A stretch of DNA of 64,000 nucleotides, from positions 62,001 through 126,000 of the forward strand of contig NW_026781868.1 in assembly GCF_031769215.1 (NCBI RefSeq). Direction: 5' to 3'. Positions 20,623 through 62,200 of the stretch are shown piece after piece. A model generated the notes under the pieces. It was not told the DNA's origin. It searched no databases and saw only the letters and a program-made list of their open reading frames with translations. This stretch comes from Ylistrum balloti (Eukaryota). Position 1 is the first letter of the stretch, and each line of letters opens with the position of its first letter. Made by a program: the position numbers and the translations under genes.

Positions 20623-23209
20623 GAATGACTCACTGTTTCCTGCGACCAATGACCAAGCTGCTGACGGTTGAAAACTTGGACACCAACAATCTATCCGATG
20701 ACCCCGTGGAGAGGTTCAGTGACCTCTGTCGTTCTTTGGTCCGTAATATATGTTTAATTCTTGCAGTCGATTGTCCACTCTTCACGTGACTTATCCGTCA
20801 CTGGCCATACCTCTTGTTATTGATGCAATGCTATCTTGAACGCTGAAGTTGAAGGGTCACTGTTAAAGATGGCCAAACTATTCTGTGTAGGTGATGTGGC
20901 CTGGTGAATGACGACAGAGTTGGCTGTAAACGTTGTAGGCGTCAGGAGACTAGCGGAAAGGCTTGCTGGTTTGAAAATGGCGTTCTGATACTTGGCTACA
21001 CACTTGTACCAATATCGTTACATCCTGTGACTCTCAGACCCGGCCCCAATTACTGTAATTGGCCTGGCCATGTCCTCGACATATTGACAGGGTAGTACAT
21101 ATATAGTGCTATAGCACTTGAGACGTGAGCATTGCATCGTGTACCTGGATAATCAGGATGTCACATAACACATGTATAGAAAGCATATCACGAAAACGTG
21201 ACCCTTAAGCGAGTTATCTACCTTGGGAAAAGCTCCACCTATATATAGAATGCATGTCGTCTTATATAATTCTCAAGGCTGTTCTGCTCTATTTTCGTTT
21301 CAGATACATAAAAAAGCAAAATATTTCCTATTACAACTGGCTTTATGTTCTCTGATATATAATTTATAATGAAATTCACGATGAAGATATCCTAAACACC
21401 GTATTCTTGCAATTTCTTGTCGTTAGTCGAAGCAGATTTGATAGCGAAAACCTCAGCCGGAAGGGGGGTGTCGGCCATCAAGTGGTGTGTGCAAGGAAAC
21501 TCTCGATCTATTCTATTATTACACTTGATATGACGTATACGAAATATTCATTTAAACATCCAATCATCTTTCACAATTTCTTTTATAAAAATAGAACCGT
21601 ATTTATAACTTGGAACCTCTTCAATGCTTTCCATGTGCACACACGATTTAATACCCCCGCCAATTTGTTCCGGTTGTACAATTAGGCCTAGTGGCAAACA
21701 CAGACAAGTTTGGCTATCTATTTAAAAAAATAAGAACAACTACTTTAAATTTGAAAATAACATCAATTTATTTGAAACAAGGAATAACAAGAGTGATATC
21801 TGACATTTGACAGAAGTAATAAAATATAATGTACATTACATTACAGTACATTACATGTTAGGCTGTAAGTATTCTGTGTTAAATGTGAACATTGTGTCAC
21901 CTTTTTTAAACTTGAGAAATATCATTTTTCATTTTCAAAATCACATTTCATGTAGATCTATATTTTCTAATTTCAAAATTTCATTTCATTTTTTAAAGGA
22001 ACTCATAATTCATTATAAATCATTTGTAAGATCTCTTTCCACATGTAATCTAAGAAAAATAGGTAAATCATGTATTTTATGAGGAAAATTGCATTACCAG
22101 GTAATTAATAAAATTATTTGCAAGAAATACAATTTTACAGTGCTTTTTTTGCCAGTTTTCAGTTACACAAGCAACACATGTATATTACATCCAGAATTTA
22201 AATATATTTGTGTAGCTATATGAACTTTTGATTAGTGTCACTTCATATGAACATCATTTTTGCTCTTTTTACAGGAAACCTGAATGACAGTATTCAAATA
22301 CATTGCAAAAAGTAATCGTAGCATATTCCATTACAGTAACCGATTTAAAATAACAAATTTCCGATTGAAAATTTCTTCATTTTCTATATATTGTAAATAG
22401 ATATGAACTCGACATTAAGTCTACACAAGATCTGCAGTATATATATCAGTAGTAGTACATGGCAAATACCTCGAGAGCTTCCAACTTATGACGAAAAAGT
22501 GAAGAGCTCCCTAGATATAGTGATGAAAAGCCATAACCATTGCCAGCGCATTGGATAAATTTTTTAAAAATACAATATGTTATAAGGCACCAAGATGAAT
22601 TTCCAAAAAGAGACATGGCACACTACTCCTAACCATTTCATGGCAGTAACCTTATAACAGGACTTGCATGTTTGTGAACAGACAGATAACAAACAATGGA
22701 AAAAAACATGTCAAGTACATATGATAAATTTAAACAAGGATAAAAAACTAAATAAGCATAAAACACATTTTTTGTAAAACAAAATAACATATTAAACAAA
22801 ATTGTGCATTTGCACTATCTGTGCTAAAAACGATAACGGTAAATACTACTGTAAATAAAGAAAATAGAGTAAATAAACTATGACAAAGAATTAAAATCAA
22901 TACACAAACTAACTTGTGCACTACCTGTTATGTATGATAATCATGTAAAATAACAACAACGAAAAACCAAACCCCCCCCCCCCCAAAAAAAAAAAAAAAC
23001 GAAGAAAAATAAAAATTAACAAAAACAATTACCCCCACAAGGTACTTCAGTATATCACATTGCTTTCATAAAAATGTTCTTAATGACTTTGTTTGATCTA
23101 TTCAATAGATATGAATTATTAAACACTCTTCAGGTATTATTATGCATGTAAGAATTTGTGCACACTTTTTACATATTTGAATACGTTGAATTGAAAAATA
23201 TTTACAAAC

Positions 23210-25308
23210 TCAATGTTTGCGATCTTTGTACACACGCCTTTTCCTTTTATTTTTGGAAAGAAGAACAAGTCGGTTTTGTTTTTCCATAACTTGTTTCAAG
23301 GCCAAAAGGCCTTTGTGGTTTGTTGCTCTAAAGTAGCTTTTGGTAATAATATCATTCATTTTCTCTAGCCCTTGTTGGGAAAAGCTGACCAAGTTTCCAT
23401 GAAGCTTGATCAACTCACTGACATGATAGTGAAGAGCATGTATATAGGGGGTAATGTCTCTACTCTGATACAAAGAAACATACATTCTGCACCAGTTTTC
23501 AGCCTTTCTTTGCACTTCATCTGGGTTGGGAGATAGAGATTTCAAAATCATATTAATATCTGAAAATGCATCCCACAACTCTTGTATTTGGTTTGCTCTT
23601 TCACTGTTAGGAAGGAGATCTGAAGCTTGAAACTTAGTCATTAATATCTGCTTCTCTGGACCTGTTAAGTCCCTTTACTCCAGCTTCCTAGTTTCCTTGT
23701 TAATATACAACTCAAATGAAATTCCCATTTGCTGCAATGCATTCTCTAATGCAGACACATGTTTGACTTTATCTCTGTCTAATTCAACAAATGTTGTATG
23801 CTGTGAAACATTATCCAATGCTCTCAGCTCTGTAACTAACAAATTAAAGAGTTTGTCAGTTATTCTAAGAAAGAGATGCAAGAGATCCAAGACAACTTGA
23901 AATGGGGTAATACATGGAAACAGAGGCCGGTTAACTATGGAGAAGGTCTGTTCTTTCTTAGGTCTTGACAACCTACTATTTGCAGGTTTATTCACAGGCT
24001 CAGTACAAATATATGATAACCTTGCCCCAAGAGCTGGGTCCTGCATTGACCATTGCTTTTTAAGAGCAATCTTCTCCTTTTTGTCACATTTACAGTATAT
24101 ACAAGAGTTTGAAGCTGCCACAGATGATATGCCAACAGCAACTAATAAGAATTTGTAGTCTCCTTCAGTATATTCCCCTGTATTTCTTCTACTTCGTGCT
24201 GTAGATCAGCTAGAGCAATGTTTAATTCAGTGTACTTTTCTTTGGTCTGAACAATGCATAAAGGATAACATGTTTGGTGAGCTAAACCTTCATTAACAAT
24301 ATTGAAAGCGAAATTGACAACATGTAACCTTTTCCCTACTCTTGTCCCATCTCCAGATATTTTCACTTTCAATTTGTTATCTGGCACTATTTCAGTGTTT
24401 TCTGACATTAAACTACTTAAAACATCAATGAGCCTTTGCTTTAAGGATTGTTGAACCCCGAGTCCATCTGGTGTAGTGATAATGTTGATACCCTTGTTTA
24501 GGTTTTTGATATACTCAGTAATGTTATGCGCCCGTGGCATAGTTTTGAATAACGAACTTAACTCGCGATATGCTTCTTGTGATACATGGAATGTATCTAA
24601 TATATACAGTAATGTGTTAATGCGATCAAGTTCTGTTACATCTACATTTTCTGTATTGTCCTCATCTGCCTGAAGAAGATCAAAGACAGCCTCTTCTCCA
24701 TTTCTTACAACTGTTACACTTATTGGTTTACAACCATGGAGTTCTAAGGCACCTAGAGCATTTTTACATCTCTCATTGTCCATTTTCATCACTTTCCTCT
24801 TGTAAGAACCTGAACACTCTTGCAAAGGTTTTCTTTTTCTTCTAATATTGTCATTAGATTCCTTCGCATAATTTTGACAATGAAAGTTTTTATCACTATC
24901 TTCACATTTTTGCAAAGCATTTTCTAAGGAGGTTATTTTGTTTTTCATTTTTTGTTCTTTTTTTCGGGCACCATTGACAAAGTCACAAAACTTCCCTTCA
25001 ATGCTATTCTTTTCAACTTCGCACTGCTTTAGTTTGCCTTTAATTTCTTCAATTTTCACTTCAGTTTCATGGGGGCCTAACGGCACATGCCAAGAAAATT
25101 TTGACTTACTAATTGAATCTTTAAATCGGTGAAACTGGTTCCCACCTTTCACTTTGGCTTGAAGGCCACTTCGTTTAAGTCTATAAAGCTCTTAAAATGT
25201 TTACATCTTTCTCATTTGCTTTAAACGATAGTGTTAGCTCATTTTCTAACTCAGTTTTGATGTTTTTGACTACATCTAACGTTAAAGGTTCTTTCCAATG
25301 ATTCTGTA
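23210..25308 (-). pseudogene. RAG1-core/Transib-like DDE transposase, inactivated
   Basis: The ORFs join across frameshifts at about 25192 and 24165 and an in-frame TAA at 23675-77 (KLE*RDLTGPEK, probably a former W). Motifs in RAG1 order: basic NBD-like RKRKPLQECSGSYKRK; LYILDTFHVSQEAYREL; KVKISGDG (D1, about 24350); GDYKF (D2, about 24159); CIYC; VLDLLHLFLRI; ITPYIHALHYHVSELIKLHGNL; SQQGLE (E, about 23364). A splice acceptor (TTTTCCTTAG) precedes 25308. Confidence 0.85.
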
Positions 25309-25436
25309 CTAAGGAAAAAAGGGTTAATTTAGATAGTACAACCATATCTATTTTCAAAACAGTTTAGAATCTTACAGCAAACATAATTGCGATTAAAATC
25401 AAATTTCCTTTTAGAAAATTTTTAAGTTTCTAAAAC

Positions 25437-25536
25437 ACTTCCTGTATTTCGGTGAATTCCATATAACTGTAGAAAATGTTAAATTCTAACTTCCTGTATT
25501 TCTGTGAATTCCATATAACTGTAAAAAAATGTTAAA
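25437..25536. repeat. 52-bp tandem duplication between the two genes of the element
   Basis: ACTTCCTGTATTTC(G/T)GTGAATTCCATATAACTGTA(G/A)AAAATGTTAAA at 25437 and 25489. Confidence 0.85.
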
Positions 25537-25583
25537 GATTCTCAAACAAACTGTCAAAAAATAGATGGCCACACTCTTGTTGA

Positions 25584-26448
25584 CTAAAGTTCTACAGCAT
25601 TCAAGAGGTCTGCACCATTGTTCCTGTTAGATGGCATTTTCACAAAGGAAAAGACCAGCTGAGTGCCTCTGTCCAGGGTATACCTTTCGATGTGCTCAGG
25701 GTACAGGAGGAAATCTGTAAGTGGTCTCCTACTATGCAGATAGAATTTCACTGTGTGTGTTTTTATATAAAAGTTGTCTCCTTCTGCATTGAGAATTCTA
25801 TAGTCCCAGCCTGTTCCAAGTAACTGATTTAACCTGTTTCTGTTCTATTATTTTATACACAGTCTTTGTCTTTGTCATTTTGTGGGGGGTTCCACAGTTG
25901 GATATTTGGAGAAATTCTGCTGCCGTCACTGGCACCTTCACTTTAACCAGACTGTCTGATCCACATGGACTTAATTTTTCTTTAATCATTACCACCAGCT
26001 TGTGGGCAAATGATGAGGTTTGGTGGGGTATCATCACAAGCTGGTCTCTTGACACTTCCTCATCATACTTCCTGTGCCACCCTGAAAGAAAAATAGAATA
26101 CATTATAATACTGATAAGTGAACATGGTAGGTGTATATCTATGGTATGTGTATACATCTATGGTACGGTTGTGGCACAATTAATACTTAATACATCAGTG
26201 TATCTATATTGAAACATATATACAGGAAATTGATTAACAGAACACTTACCTACATAATGGATCTTTACATAACCTTCTTGGCCCTCATTTATCACCTCCA
26301 CAGGATACAGACCAGTACTCCAGGTATCGTTTGAATTCCTGCTTCTTGATCGTCTTGATTGGGGCAGATTTGTACTGTTTAACTCACTGGAATTAAGACA
26401 ATTCATTATCAATACAAAGATCAGTATTATTGATTACATTTTCAACAT
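25584..26448 (-). pseudogene. Spliced accessory gene: Tudor-knot/chromo-barrel-like domain plus an uncharacterised C-terminal domain; frameshifted
   Basis: Exon ending at 26250 (GTAAGT donor), 168-nt intron, exon starting at 26081 (TTTCAG acceptor). Together they restore YPVEVINEGQEGYVKIHYVG|WHRKYDEEVSRDQL. A 1-nt frameshift at about 25830 continues as QLLGTGWDYRILNAEGDNFYIKTHTVKFYLHSRRPLTDFLLYPEHIERYTLDRGTQLVFSFVKMPSNRNNGADLLNAVEL* (stop 25584-86). The 5' end is uncertain (candidate acceptor at 26448). Confidence 0.75.
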
Positions 26449-26576
26449 CTGTAGGTATATGACAACTTAAATACTGCACAATAACACTATATTAAAACTC
26501 AAGTTGGATGCTCGCACAGTTATTGAAATTCAGCTAAATATAATTATTTCTGACCTCAATGGCATTTTGCATTATA

Positions 26577-26752
26577 CAGTGGAACCTGTGAAATATGACA
26601 TACATTGGGAGTTCATAATGTGGTCAGATTCCACAGGTTGTTGGAAAAGTCAGGATATTTCTACATGAATTAGTAACACTTGGTATGGCAAACTGTATCA
26701 GAAAGGACAGGATGTCGGAAAAGTCAGGTGTCAGATTTCACAGGTTTCACTG
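26577..26752. mobile_element. Tc1/mariner-type MITE, 176 bp, inserted in the upstream part of the RAG1-like element
   Basis: TA TSD on both sides; TIRs CAGTGGAACCTGTGAAATATGACA and CAGTGAAACCTGTGAAATCTGACA (22/24 identical). Confidence 0.9.
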
Positions 26753-27939
26753 TATCGTCAATAGGACCTTACAGAATATTTGACATTTTAAAAACATTCC
26801 AAATATGTTGGATTAAGATACTGTTTAAATAATTGATTCTTTCTGTATGCAGTGTGTTCAAAGGCCATGGTCAAAAGAACATTTTACTATCTCTGATATA
26901 AAAACAGCTGGGACTTGTGTGAAAGTAGGTGGTGGGAACTGCCGGCTCCTATTGAACACACTTGACTCTCTGTAAATGATTGAAACTTCTTTTTTGGCCC
27001 TTATTTGACATACAAATTTCTTCTGTGGCTAATCTTAAGAAGTGCACCCCTTTTTATTTTCTGTTGATGTACGTGCACTGTACGCTTATTAGGACGAATA
27101 CAGTATATTGTCCATTCACTTAAATTCTTCTGTATGTGGGAGTGTGTCCGTTTTTTTTATGTGTTCTGAACTGGGTCTCCAGCAACCAGCATGATAATAA
27201 GCCAGAGTCTACAAACTGACCCACACGGCCACATAACGACCCCTTTTCTTGACGTGAAACGAAATAACGAAAACAAGAATGTAAAATAACAAAACGTAAG
27301 TATACATATATATCGAGCCGGAATAATTCCACTCGGTCGCTACATGTGTATTCAGACCCTTTATCTCTGATTTTCTTGACGCCTAGCGTAAATGACAATC
27401 TTCGTTATTTCGGTCTGAAAATGCAATGTCCGATCTGTCACTCTATCTGCCAAAGAAAAAACTATCATCTTCGTTATTTCAACCCGCTGTGCGACAGAAT
27501 GAAGTTATGAATACAATCGTCTTTTCATCCCGTTCCCCCATAGCGCCGGTAAATAAAGAATACATGGCCAGTGTCTTAAAATATAAGTTGTACTTTGGCG
27601 AGGGTTAGTAAAGACAAAAGTGGTGATCCTCTGGCGAGCCACTTATTGTCTTTCTGTCCCGAAATTAGTATATAGATTACGATGAGGATTTCATATTTGA
27701 ATCAAAATATTTGTTTCAGATTCTTTCTTCAAACATGATTCGAAGATCTTAAGTTATAGCTACACACGTCATTAAATATACTGATACTATTATTTATGCG
27801 TGTATACTTATATATATATGGTAGGTGTATTCCGACAATGGGCAGCGGAAATTGCATTATGAAAGCTTAATCTAATAAGTTATCAACATCAAAAACATTA
27901 ATTTAGTGATCATTGTACGATATTCTGATTGTATTATGA

Positions 27940-59200: not shown

Positions 59201-62200
59201 CCGGAACAGATGTCATTTTTTCCTACCGTGTAAAAAATGTGTGTAGATAGTGTAGCTATCGGATTCAATGATTTACTCACCTCGGTTTTTCGCAGTATAG
59301 AGGCATTATATGACGTGAAGAAAGAAAGGGTGATAAATATCCTTCTGGTAACATCTTCTCTCGCATGACCTTGACTAAACATAGTATTATCATGTTAGTA
59401 ACTTAATTGGTTATGATCGCGGTCTTCTGTGGAATAGATAATCAGTTTATAGGGAAAATATCCTAAACATCAAACCCTGTAAACAGGAAAGTGATAGAGT
59501 CAAACACACAGAGAATACCTAGTTTTATGCGTGATAATTCAATACTAAATAATTTAATCTCCTGAAACGCCGAGTTGCTAAGAATGACAGGAACTGGTAG
59601 ATGCCTCCATCTTTCAGTGATATTTTTTCCTATTATGTGTTCTCCCCGGAATTGTTTTGGTTTAAGATCCATATATGTTGAATCTAAGTGAAGTATTGAA
59701 TACAAACGTAATTAGTCTGGGCGATCGCCAAAAAATAACCAAGCTTTTCATTTATCATTTCAAACGAGATTTATGAAACTCGGGCAGACGTTTTTGTAAT
59801 GTTTCTCGATTAAAATATATTGCAAAAACTTCAAAATGACTGCACATTACCTTCGTTTCATATACCTTATTACGTCTTTAAACAGTTCAAAATTGACATC
59901 TTTCACTTAAATGACACAAACTTTGAACCTTTGATATTTTTTTTCTTACCTGTGTATATAAATGACAGGCAACACAATTGTATTTTGAATTGTCACTAGT
60001 TATAAAGGCATGTGTTGATATACTGATGACTTAGACAGGTGAACAAAGCCAGCAGGTTGTCTTTTGATTATCGAGGTGTATCTCGGATTGTACAGCGGTA
60101 TGTTTTCAAGTGCATTCACTTTTTAAACTCTCGTATTTACAAAGTTGGCCCCCCTGGAGCACAAAGTCAAATTGCGTGTGTACGAATTACCAGTGGTAGC
60201 GGGAGAAATGCATGGCCTTGTGAAACAACACATTACAAAGACTAACGACACCTCCCACACGGCTGATTTAACTGATGATCCGAATGACGCTATTCCGGGT
60301 ATTGGGGTGTTCAAATTAGGCATATACGTAAGATAGTTGGACACACACATTCTGCTTTATAGGTAACTTTTAAGGAATTATCTTTACAATGTCTTCAACA
60401 AAGAGTTCCATCAACTCCTATGGATAGAACCGCTAGTCCGAATCAAATGCGCTCGAAAAATGGACCTCCCGAGCGAAGAACATGCGAGGTAACTATCATG
60501 AGATGGGTGTGTCTATGAGGGTTGGGAGGAGTGGGGGTCACGGGGGAAACTTTACCCAAAATGGCGCAGCTGAGATTTAGGAAGGTTTCAGGAAGATTTA
60601 CAATGACTCTATCAAGACATTTTATATAATAATAATGAAGACTAGATTTGACAGTTTAATCGGTGTCATTTCTGTGTGAAAAGAATATTTTATCTATTTA
60701 TAAAGAAACACTCCGTGGAGAAGTATTGGTAGTTAGGGCCTTAGTCTGTACCGCCACAGAATGGTGATCTGAGTTACTTCTTCATGATCTACGTTATATT
60801 GAGGTCACGGTTTGTTAACAAGATATCTTGTCATATTTAACGATCTTTAACTGTATTATCGCCGGAGGGGTCTTACTCTGGAAGAAAACATGAAAATCCA
60901 ATTATAATCTCCTAATCTTATGTTTTATTTTAAATAAAAAAAATACAGTATTCTATTTTCTTAAATATTGTACTGAATTCATATAACCAAATATCAGACT
61001 AGAAAATTCGTTTTTCGACTCCAGTTCGGTTTGTACAGATCACATGGCGCAATTAACAAACATTGTCTGGTAGTTCACTGTTTCTTGGCTACTTTTATTT
61101 TTCAACTTCTATTACATAAAATAATTTAAACTAAAAAATTGTCTAAATGAAGTGTATTTAAAAATCATCAGAGAGAAATCAAAATGTCAAGTTTTAACTG
61201 TTATGTGGTCAACTTTGTAGGATTCATTATAATCAATTAGGGCAAGTTTGTTTGTTTAATCGATAAGTATTGTTATTACGTTTCCACAAGATTATCATAC
61301 AACATACAGATTGTCGAAAGATCTGAAAGAACACTGATCCGACAGAAAGGCATAATATGGCCATAAAGAAAATATAAATTTTGGGTTCAAATTGCTTCTG
61401 GACTCTTTATCCTACCAGGTTTTTCGATATCACTGTATTGTTGACAAATTATAATTTTAATGTTTTATGAAAGAGGCAAAGTTCTTTCACAAAGCCCAGT
61501 GGTTATATTAAACAATCAAGGTTGAAATAGAATATTCCGTTTCGCGCGCATGTATTCTCGTCACACAGAGTCGTTAAGTTATTTATGTCTCTTACTTTAC
61601 GTAAAACTGTGCACATGCATCATGTGTTGGAATGCCACCGAACACGGCTAAGGTCAAATGTCACCACTGTCTGGAGGTGTAGACTTGTGTGAAATATGTC
61701 TACATCTCGCGTGTACGTGCACGGTCCCGCTCGCGCACCCAGCCACACGCAGGAGCGTGCAGTTGTCGATAGACCAGTCAGATGCCCGGACCTTTATACA
61801 TCATCAGACAGAGTTGTTCACTACAGACCAATATCAATGCTGTTGGAAATGCCAAACGTTCTCAATAAATGTTCCCTTTGTTTGGTCTCTTATCATAGCT
61901 ATATACGCAACATAGAAACTAGGGGATTTGCCTTCAAACTTTTACCAGGTAGAAATATCTGTAGAAGGTATTCAATGTTTCTAAAGAATCAATATACAAG
62001 TCTTTACATTTTAAGAATACATCATAAAAATCTATATGTTTGCCTGTAATCAATTACCTCTCTTAAATCCACGATTTATGTAGCATCAGGCTAATATTTT
62101 ATATTTATGATACAATTTAAAATATATCAAATATTGTTTTGTTTGCATGAGTGTTGTAAATTCACGAATTAGTATTCTTTCATAGATTTTTTTTAAATAA

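Follow-up and report, generated by a model that had tools for sequence, protein, structure and literature searches.

A decayed two-gene DNA transposon with a RAG1-fold transposase and a putative chromo-barrel partner in the scallop Ylistrum balloti

The scallop Ylistrum balloti carries a decayed transposase gene with a second gene just upstream of it on contig NW_026781868.1. To which group of transposons does this locus belong, and is the second gene part of the element? The stretch analysed (the window) comprises 64,000 nucleotides, positions 62,001 to 126,000 of this contig (assembly GCF_031769215.1), and positions in the window are used throughout. A preliminary description, made from the sequence without database searches, had placed a two-gene RAG1/Transib-like DNA transposon at 23210-26448, with a putative chromatin reader as the partner in place of RAG2. 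The region 21184-27223 (minus strand) was found to be a decayed copy of a two-gene DNA transposon, here termed family A, which lacks a 5' terminal inverted repeat (TIR). It is probably (about 0.8) a dead copy of a two-gene cut-and-paste transposon that forms a separate lineage of the CACTA/Mirage/Chapaev/Transib (CMCT) group and has the partner protein as a cofactor.

The transposase and its partner gene

The RAG1-fold DDE transposase pseudogene is located at 23210-25345 on the minus strand. It is comprised of three consecutive open reading frame (ORF) pieces (25152-24142, 24121-23675 and 23641-23210) which together amount to ~720 amino acids (aa), with the ATG at 25345. The assignment was based on the ORF pieces and their motifs, on the alignment of the intact Ylistrum protein P0004 with the family, and on fold and profile matches to RAG1. 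The motifs of the window copy are KVKISGDG, GDYKF followed in a shifted frame by CIYCKC, VLDLLHLF, ITPYIHALHYHVSELIKLHG (ITPYIH...HVSELIKLHG) and SQQGLEK. The ordered RAG1-core hallmarks previously listed for this locus (DDE, CxxC, HxxxxH, DxLH and ITPYIH...HVSELIKLHG) were located in the ORF pieces, and the family's catalytic and zinc residues align with RAG1. The transposase is built on an RNase H core, carries a CxxC and an HxxxxH zinc site in the interval from the second Asp to the Glu, and frequently has a CCHC knuckle at its C-terminus. Residues D312, D389, C408, C411, H628, H633 and E653 were invariant in 25 sequences, each 26-37% identical to the reference P0012.

An AlphaFold2 model of the transposase had a predicted local distance difference test score of 83.7. 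Foldseek comparison of the fold to the PDB gave RAG1, BbRAG1L or HzTransib for all of the top 49 matches (E 9e-14 to 2e-6); the alignments span 512-700 columns, and the template modelling (TM) score by target is 0.43-0.67. This places the predicted fold inside the RAG1/Transib class. Rank 50 was the P-element transposase (E 5e-3). Searching the PDB with a profile of 15 homologues returned RAG1 chains at E 2e-7, and the 16 best matches were all RAG1 or RAG1L. In the profile alignment GGD falls on D708 of RAG1, CxxC on C727/C730, HxxxxH on H937/H942 and QQGLE on E962. A single-sequence phmmer search of the PDB with the transposase gave noise only (ERAP1, E 0.11); the RAG1 match came with the profile. 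Judged by sequence and fold, the closest solved relative is RAG1.

No Pfam family was matched by the whole transposase at the significance threshold. Recurring matches below the threshold were to RAG1 (E 0.0045, 0.001 and 0.00027), while DUF1280 and DUF1258 were matched once each. No member attained the gathering cut-off of the Pfam RAG1 model (PF12940, 25 bits). The best scores were 19.6 bits (P0054) and 15.6 bits (the C-terminal piece of the window copy), and one of the 15 aligned members matched at E 0.001. The Chapaev model DUF1280 (PF06918) was matched by one member in 15 at E 0.014, well under its 25-bit cut-off. A six-frame search of the Ylistrum genome with PF06918 and PF12940 gave no match, but the controls also gave none. 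The element had been described as related to RAG1 and Transib without being RAG1L proper. This view stands: fold and profile both match RAG1 best, yet the Pfam RAG1 cut-off is not reached.

The partner gene had been described as spliced and as sitting head-to-tail about 280 bp upstream of the transposase. The gene order and the splicing held, with a GT/AG intron visible, but the gap to the transposase ATG is ~240 bp. The exon at ~26250-26386 (minus strand) encodes most of the chromo-barrel and is homologous to exon 2 of Mizuhopecten P0016. Its splice sites were read from the sequence; it ends ...GLYPVEVINEGQEGYVKIHYVG (WSTGLYPVEVINEGQEGYVKIHYVG; ...GYVKIHYVG) at a GT donor. The last exon, at 25584-26081 (minus strand), follows an AG acceptor, encodes the end of the chromo-barrel (WHRKYDEEV) and a C-terminal domain of ~130 aa, and ends with NAVEL. 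It was also matched in a genome search with the accessory profile (C11:87599-88085, corresponding to window 25599-26085).

The complete partner protein is ~230-245 aa long, with an N-terminal Royal-family chromo-barrel and a conserved C-terminal domain. Homologues were P0016 (Mizuhopecten, 228 aa), P0017 (Argopecten, 239 aa), P0181 (Ylistrum family B, 245 aa), a 229-aa ORF in family C, and ORFs in family D and in Holothuria. Using VIA-align, partner residues 40-84 matched the chromo-type domains of RBBP1/ARID4A, MRG15 and MRG701, the chromodomains of Polycomb and HP1, and the Tudor domain of TDRD3 (Z 5.0-5.6, root-mean-square deviation 1.3-2.5 A over 40-45 residues). A phmmer search with the N-terminus of the Holothuria partner matched the MBT repeats of L3MBTL3 (4e-5), the chromo barrel of ARID4A (1e-4), CBX7 (1e-4), MORF4L1 (0.01) and MSL3 (0.02). 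Pfam matches to MSL3_chromo-like, Chromo and Tudor-knot recurred in independent partner members, the window exon included. None of them reached its gathering score (21.7 of 28, 20.8 of 25.1 and 16 of 20.8 bits, respectively). Four aromatic/His positions were kept in all partner families: (L/F)Y..E, (H/K)(Y/F), G(W/Y/F) and (Y/H/F)D. They would be compatible with a putative methyl-lysine cage, in which we presume to place them as in MRG15. The C-terminal domain of ~130 residues is also conserved, with W..R.(L/I/C)N...D and ...F invariant.

Foldseek with the whole partner model gave nothing meaningful (best E 0.02), and the partner profile had no match in the PDB. No kelch, PHD or RAG2 signal was found in the linked gene by Pfam or structure comparisons. 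The N-terminus matches solved Royal-family readers, in agreement with the earlier suggestion that a chromo-barrel partner is linked to the transposase in place of RAG2.

Linkage of the two genes and extent of the window copy

Co-occurrence of the two genes was checked across genomes. The partner gene was linked to the transposase in 7/8 loci from at least four host genomes, scallops and a sea cucumber among them. It was found upstream on the same strand in family A of Ylistrum (the window and C941), Mizuhopecten and Argopecten, in Ylistrum family B, and in Holothuria, where it lies 9 nt ahead of the transposase ATG. In families C (a 4724-bp element) and D it lies downstream on the opposite strand, so that the genes are convergent. 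The remaining locus, P0020 (L070), had no partner within 6 kb.

A transposase profile search of the Ylistrum genome gave 413 candidate places, of which 61 were scored, yielding 53 loci. A partner match was located just upstream on the same strand in 43 of these 53 scored loci (coordinates compared by hand). Several of the scored loci had open frames of 714-741 aa, and dozens of decayed copies were present. The pair is not a chance association, since the same two genes recur in dozens of loci. From its linkage across families and hosts, the gene pair is an ancestral, conserved feature of the lineage.

Other arrangements were observed around the two genes. Nine partner-like ORFs of 203 aa form a perfect tandem array with a 1567-bp period in Ylistrum (C373:298216-311264), with a transposase fragment adjoining at 311478-312545. 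In Argopecten irradians the last 80 partner codons are present in three tandem copies between the partner gene and the transposase (L024:10312-11231). Two transposase relatives on ENA contigs, P0032 (1305 aa) and P0043 (940 aa), are far longer than the others, with the matched part C-terminal, and a 763-aa gene comes after P0032. Such proteins may represent fusions or a different architecture within the family. The partnerless relative in L070:1-14283 (ENA ERZ25878500) lies among retroelement genes (RVT_1, and rve plus Chromo) and a RING-finger ORF, and may be a fragment nested in other repeats.

The window copy was compared to a second Ylistrum copy, C941 (L019 24-6098), which is 97% identical over exactly 21184-27223. 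The gene pair proposed at 23210-26448 was thus recovered, but the true repeat unit is larger than that span. Both flanks of the window copy differ from those of C941. The C941 copy is intact: it has a 726-aa transposase ORF (P0004, annotated as LOC132562943), and the last exon of its partner gene is open. Pairwise alignment of the two copies gave 81 substitutions and 14 indels.

Four lesions in the window copy were located by comparison to C941, all on the minus strand. A +1 nt insertion at 25845 breaks the partner-gene frame. In the transposase a 5-nt deletion at 25193 shifts the frame at the N-terminus, and a 40-nt deletion at 24164 shifts it again just ahead of the second catalytic Asp (GGDYKF), with GDYKF resuming in another frame. 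A premature stop at 23675-23677 gives LE*RDL in place of LEYRDL of the intact copy. The frameshift-type decay reported earlier for both genes is real, as the indels and the stop codon are seen against an intact copy of 97% identity.

The 3' TIR of the window copy is 13 bp long and lies at 21184-21196 on the minus strand; it reads CATATCACGAAAA on the plus strand, and the element ends ...TTTTCGTGATATG. Position 21184 is where similarity to both C941 and the Mizuhopecten element ends exactly, and going by these alignments the low-coordinate edge is the true terminus of the element. The 5' region, at 26387-27223 (minus strand), shares its edge with the C941 copy and contains no recognisable TIR or first exon. 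An inverted repeat of the 3' end was looked for at the 5' edge (27223) and was not found, and the first coding exon of the partner gene was not found in the window. The 5' 820 bp of the window element gave no alignment to the 5' regions of the Mizuhopecten or family B elements. A 27-nt inverted repeat was observed in the 5' non-coding part (26574-26600 / 26729-26755), with arms 93% complementary and 128 nt apart.

Termini, target sites and mobility

Complete elements were 4.7 to 6.6 kb in size. They had short imperfect TIRs, starting with 5'-CAT and ending with ATG-3'. The terminal sequence was CATATCA... for families A and B, and CATCACAGG... for family C. The family A element of Mizuhopecten yessoensis (L025 7920-14496) carried a perfect 13-bp inverted repeat, identical to the window 3' TIR, at both ends. 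The family A transposases of Ylistrum, Mizuhopecten and Argopecten were 74-79% identical. Family B of Ylistrum has ~65% nucleotide identity to family A in the transposase. It comprised ~8 distinct full-length insertions of 5.4-5.5 kb, which were 98-99.4% identical, with termini CATATCAAGATTATTTTGTAGT / ...ACTACAACTATATATTGATATG. Both genes of family B are intact, the transposase with 713 aa (P0001) and the spliced partner gene (P0181). The three copies of family C shared 99.87% identity over 4724 bp.

Direct repeats, whatever their length, were absent from the edges of all 11 complete insertions (7 of family B, 3 of family C and 1 of Mizuhopecten). The aligned copies thereby define both features that had been left to them, with TIRs of the form CAT...ATG and a target-site duplication (TSD) of 0 bp. 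An empty allele of the C729 insertion of family B (L021) was found in contigs of the public runs X1, X3 and X6, from three samples. Its joint, 2915->8324, skips exactly 5408 bp. The skipped segment has the ends CA..TG, the joint is ambiguous by 1 nt, and nothing is duplicated. The C729 insertion is polymorphic, since these run contigs carry the empty allele. The same public runs show other, different flanks at the ends of family B elements. Relatives in family B are still mobile.

No empty site was found within the assembly by the left flanks of two family B insertions. A TIR pattern search for miniature inverted-repeat relatives gave known copies only, near background. Further forms of family B were seen. 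Runs X1 and X2 carry a form of C729 that skips 3401 bp, from within the partner gene to near the 3' end (L021:4980-8382), perhaps a non-autonomous derivative with an internal deletion. Runs X3 and X6 contained a rearranged joint in L021, 8231->5280, whose two sides are separated by TTAAAA. One family B insertion recurred in C825, C695 and C1262 with left flanks that were identical in all three; the right flanks, seen in C825 and C695 alone, were identical as well. This suggests that the three are haplotigs or one locus assembled in duplicate. The C695 copy contained in-frame stops.

Relationship to known elements and significance

An exhaustive HMMER search with the transposase returned 8658 cluster representatives at E<=1e-3 and at least 1058 at E<=1e-30. 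The few named relatives were 'uncharacterized' or 'hypothetical' proteins of scallops and Holothuria leucospilota. In the ESM Atlas the nearest clusters by language-model features carried DUF1280 (0.91), with RAG1 clusters at 0.86-0.89. By structure the DUF1280 and RAG1 clusters both had a TM of ~0.56. DUF1280 is the Chapaev transposase, which has already been grouped with RAG1 (PMC3985635). Because the nearest non-RAG1 families by language-model features are of Chapaev type, the element belongs to the wider group of CACTA/Mirage/Chapaev (CMC) elements together with Transib. The family is best read as a separate lineage within the CMCT assemblage, on a branch that lies outside the available family models.

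The proximity to DUF1280 could also mean that the element is an ordinary member of a catalogued CMC family, of the Chapaev or Chapaev3 type, whose second ORF was simply undiscussed in papers. A second protein is common in CACTA elements (En/Spm TnpA and TnpD). The whole CMCT group has CA..TG termini, C(2)C / H(3-4)H motifs and a TSD of 2-5 bp (PMC12730594; Kojima 2025). The present family has CAT...ATG termini and invariant CIYC and HxxxxH motifs, in keeping with that group, but a TSD of 0 bp. No 0-bp TSD was reported for the CMCT group in the literature covered. Chapaev3 differs in its 3-bp TWA TSD and CAC termini (PMC3014272). In Pfam the Chapaev/CMC transposons are represented by DUF1280, DUF1258 and Transposase_21. 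DUF1280 and DUF1258 gave a single match each, far below their cut-offs, whereas RAG1 was matched more often and better. Every member is named 'uncharacterized' at NCBI and no Pfam family covers them. No description of an element of this kind came up in a full-text literature search, with Repbase and Dfam outside it, and the chromo-barrel partner is without description in the Chapaev/CMC papers searched. The largest RAG1/Transib survey covered makes no mention of one (PMC9435367). Membership of a catalogued CMC family is accordingly given a minor but real chance.

RAG1 being the best match by fold and profile, the element could instead be a true Transib or RAGL transposon, next to an unrelated host gene or a captured passenger. 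Transib and RAGL have a 5-bp TSD (PMC9435367). TSDs of 5, 3 and 2 bp occur within one Transib lineage, so TSD length is labile (bioRxiv 10.64898/2026.08.26.747230). HzTransib (PDB 6PQN/6PQX) is alike in overall fold (Foldseek E 2.5e-9 to 2e-6), and both have DDE and C2H2 zinc sites. It ranks below RAG1 by Foldseek, however, and is absent from the sequence-profile matches in which RAG1 appears. Transib encodes a transposase only, and neither a 5-bp TSD nor a TIR with a CAC heptamer resembling a recombination signal sequence was found in the present family. RAGL/ProtoRAG is alike in its RAG1-fold DDE transposase with ZnC2/ZnH2 ligands and in its second gene within the TIRs, which carries a histone-reader-type module. 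The genes of families C and D are convergent as in RAGL (PMC9435367), whereas those of the scallop and sea-cucumber families are head-to-tail. RAGL has as its partner a kelch propeller with a PHD finger, a CAC heptamer and a 5-bp TSD. The present family has a chromo-barrel protein of ~230 aa, CAT... termini and 0 bp; it lacks a RAG2L/kelch gene, and every member falls below the Pfam RAG1 cut-off. A passenger gene is further opposed by the retention of the partner inside the TIRs of families only 33% identical at the transposase level. The partner is also found in molluscs and an echinoderm, in two orientations and with intact ORFs in young copies, and across the Ylistrum genome it accompanies 43 of the 53 scored loci. 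This reading is considered unlikely.

A domesticated pair of scallop host genes, with the window copy as a pseudogenised duplicate, would account for the linked family A pair in Ylistrum, Mizuhopecten and Argopecten, for the annotation of these as ordinary genes by NCBI, and for the absence of the 5' TIR from the Ylistrum family A copies. Against this, the family A element of Mizuhopecten is bounded by perfect TIRs, and the terminus is exactly where it ceases to resemble the window. The sister family B is multicopy, ~99% identical and presence/absence polymorphic between individuals, and dozens of decayed copies are found in the Ylistrum genome. Domestication is judged very improbable. Helitron and Crypton elements were ruled out by the DDE residues and TIRs. 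KDZ, Zisupton and the P-element were ruled out by the lack of Pfam matches, the P-element being only rank 50 by fold.

Two more distant systems share single features with the family. Chromoviruses (Ty3/gypsy, integrase with a C-terminal chromodomain) and the RAG2 PHD finger both join a mobile-element recombinase with a reader of methyl-lysine, by which integration is steered or licensed; here the reader module would instead be on a separate protein of a DNA transposon. Spy elements are likewise eukaryotic DDE transposons that insert without target duplication, and they have a strict target motif. No target motif was seen in the family B insertions, and the Spy transposase is unrelated in fold and family. 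Spy elements are PIF/Harbinger-like and without a TSD, as named in the classification of bioRxiv 10.1101/2021.09.26.461848.

Several points count against a two-gene element of a separate lineage with the partner as cofactor. Where the family stands with respect to Chapaev and Transib was judged from scores and not from a tree. The chromo-barrel matches are modest: Z is below 6, even considering how small the domain is, and the Pfam scores do not reach the cut-offs. No recognised fold was found for the C-terminal domain of the partner by Foldseek, by profile comparison to the PDB or by VIA-align. In addition to P0020, 10/53 scored Ylistrum loci were without a partner gene. Window 27223 and L019 6098 of C941 mark a common 5' edge that has no TIR (TGGGTCAGTTTGTAG, read in gene orientation), with flanks that differ on both sides. 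Neither simple cut-and-paste nor simple segmental duplication accounts for this shared edge. Complex prediction for the family C transposase with its own partner scored 0.00 with the alignments unused by the tool, and weighs neither way.

For the two-gene transposon a mechanism can be proposed. By homology with RAG1 and HzTransib, the transposase would excise the element with nicks at the CA/TG ends and hairpins on the flanks. Both element ends would then be joined to directly opposed phosphates with no stagger, unlike RAG1/Transib, and this would leave no TSD. The partner protein may be a transposition cofactor, considering its domain content and the analogy with RAG2, chromovirus integrases and CACTA TnpA. 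By analogy with RAG2 and RAG1, the chromo-barrel probably reads a methyl-lysine histone mark and so chooses or licenses chromatin; it is from this analogy that we infer chromatin targeting by the partner. The C-terminal domain is likely to touch either the transposase or the ends of the element. As a whole the arrangement would parallel that of RAG2 with RAG1, or of TnpA with TnpD in CACTA elements.

RAG1-RAG2 is the textbook transposase that works only with a histone-mark-reading partner, and the origin of that partnership is an open question. The present family is best read as a new lineage of the CMC and Transib group in which both the partner and the integration geometry are unusual. A broader claim is tentative and is held at less than even odds. 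It states that the family is an undescribed, superfamily-level RAG1-fold lineage, widespread in marine invertebrates, whose integration has a stagger of 0 bp and relies on a separate chromatin-reading Royal-domain protein. In that case the pairing of a RAG1-type recombinase with a histone reader would have arisen at least twice, here and in RAG1-RAG2.

With its RAG1-fold enzyme and reader-type partner the family supplies a second natural pairing of this sort, independent of RAG1-RAG2. It would make it testable whether chromatin licensing is a general need of the RAG1-fold enzyme class, what fixes the strand-transfer spacing (0 bp here and 5 bp in RAG and Transib), and how far the RAG1/Transib/Chapaev group truly reaches. 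More than a thousand protein clusters now 'uncharacterized' could gain annotation. As a footprint-free element that is mobile today in a commercially fished scallop, family B provides live elements for such tests.

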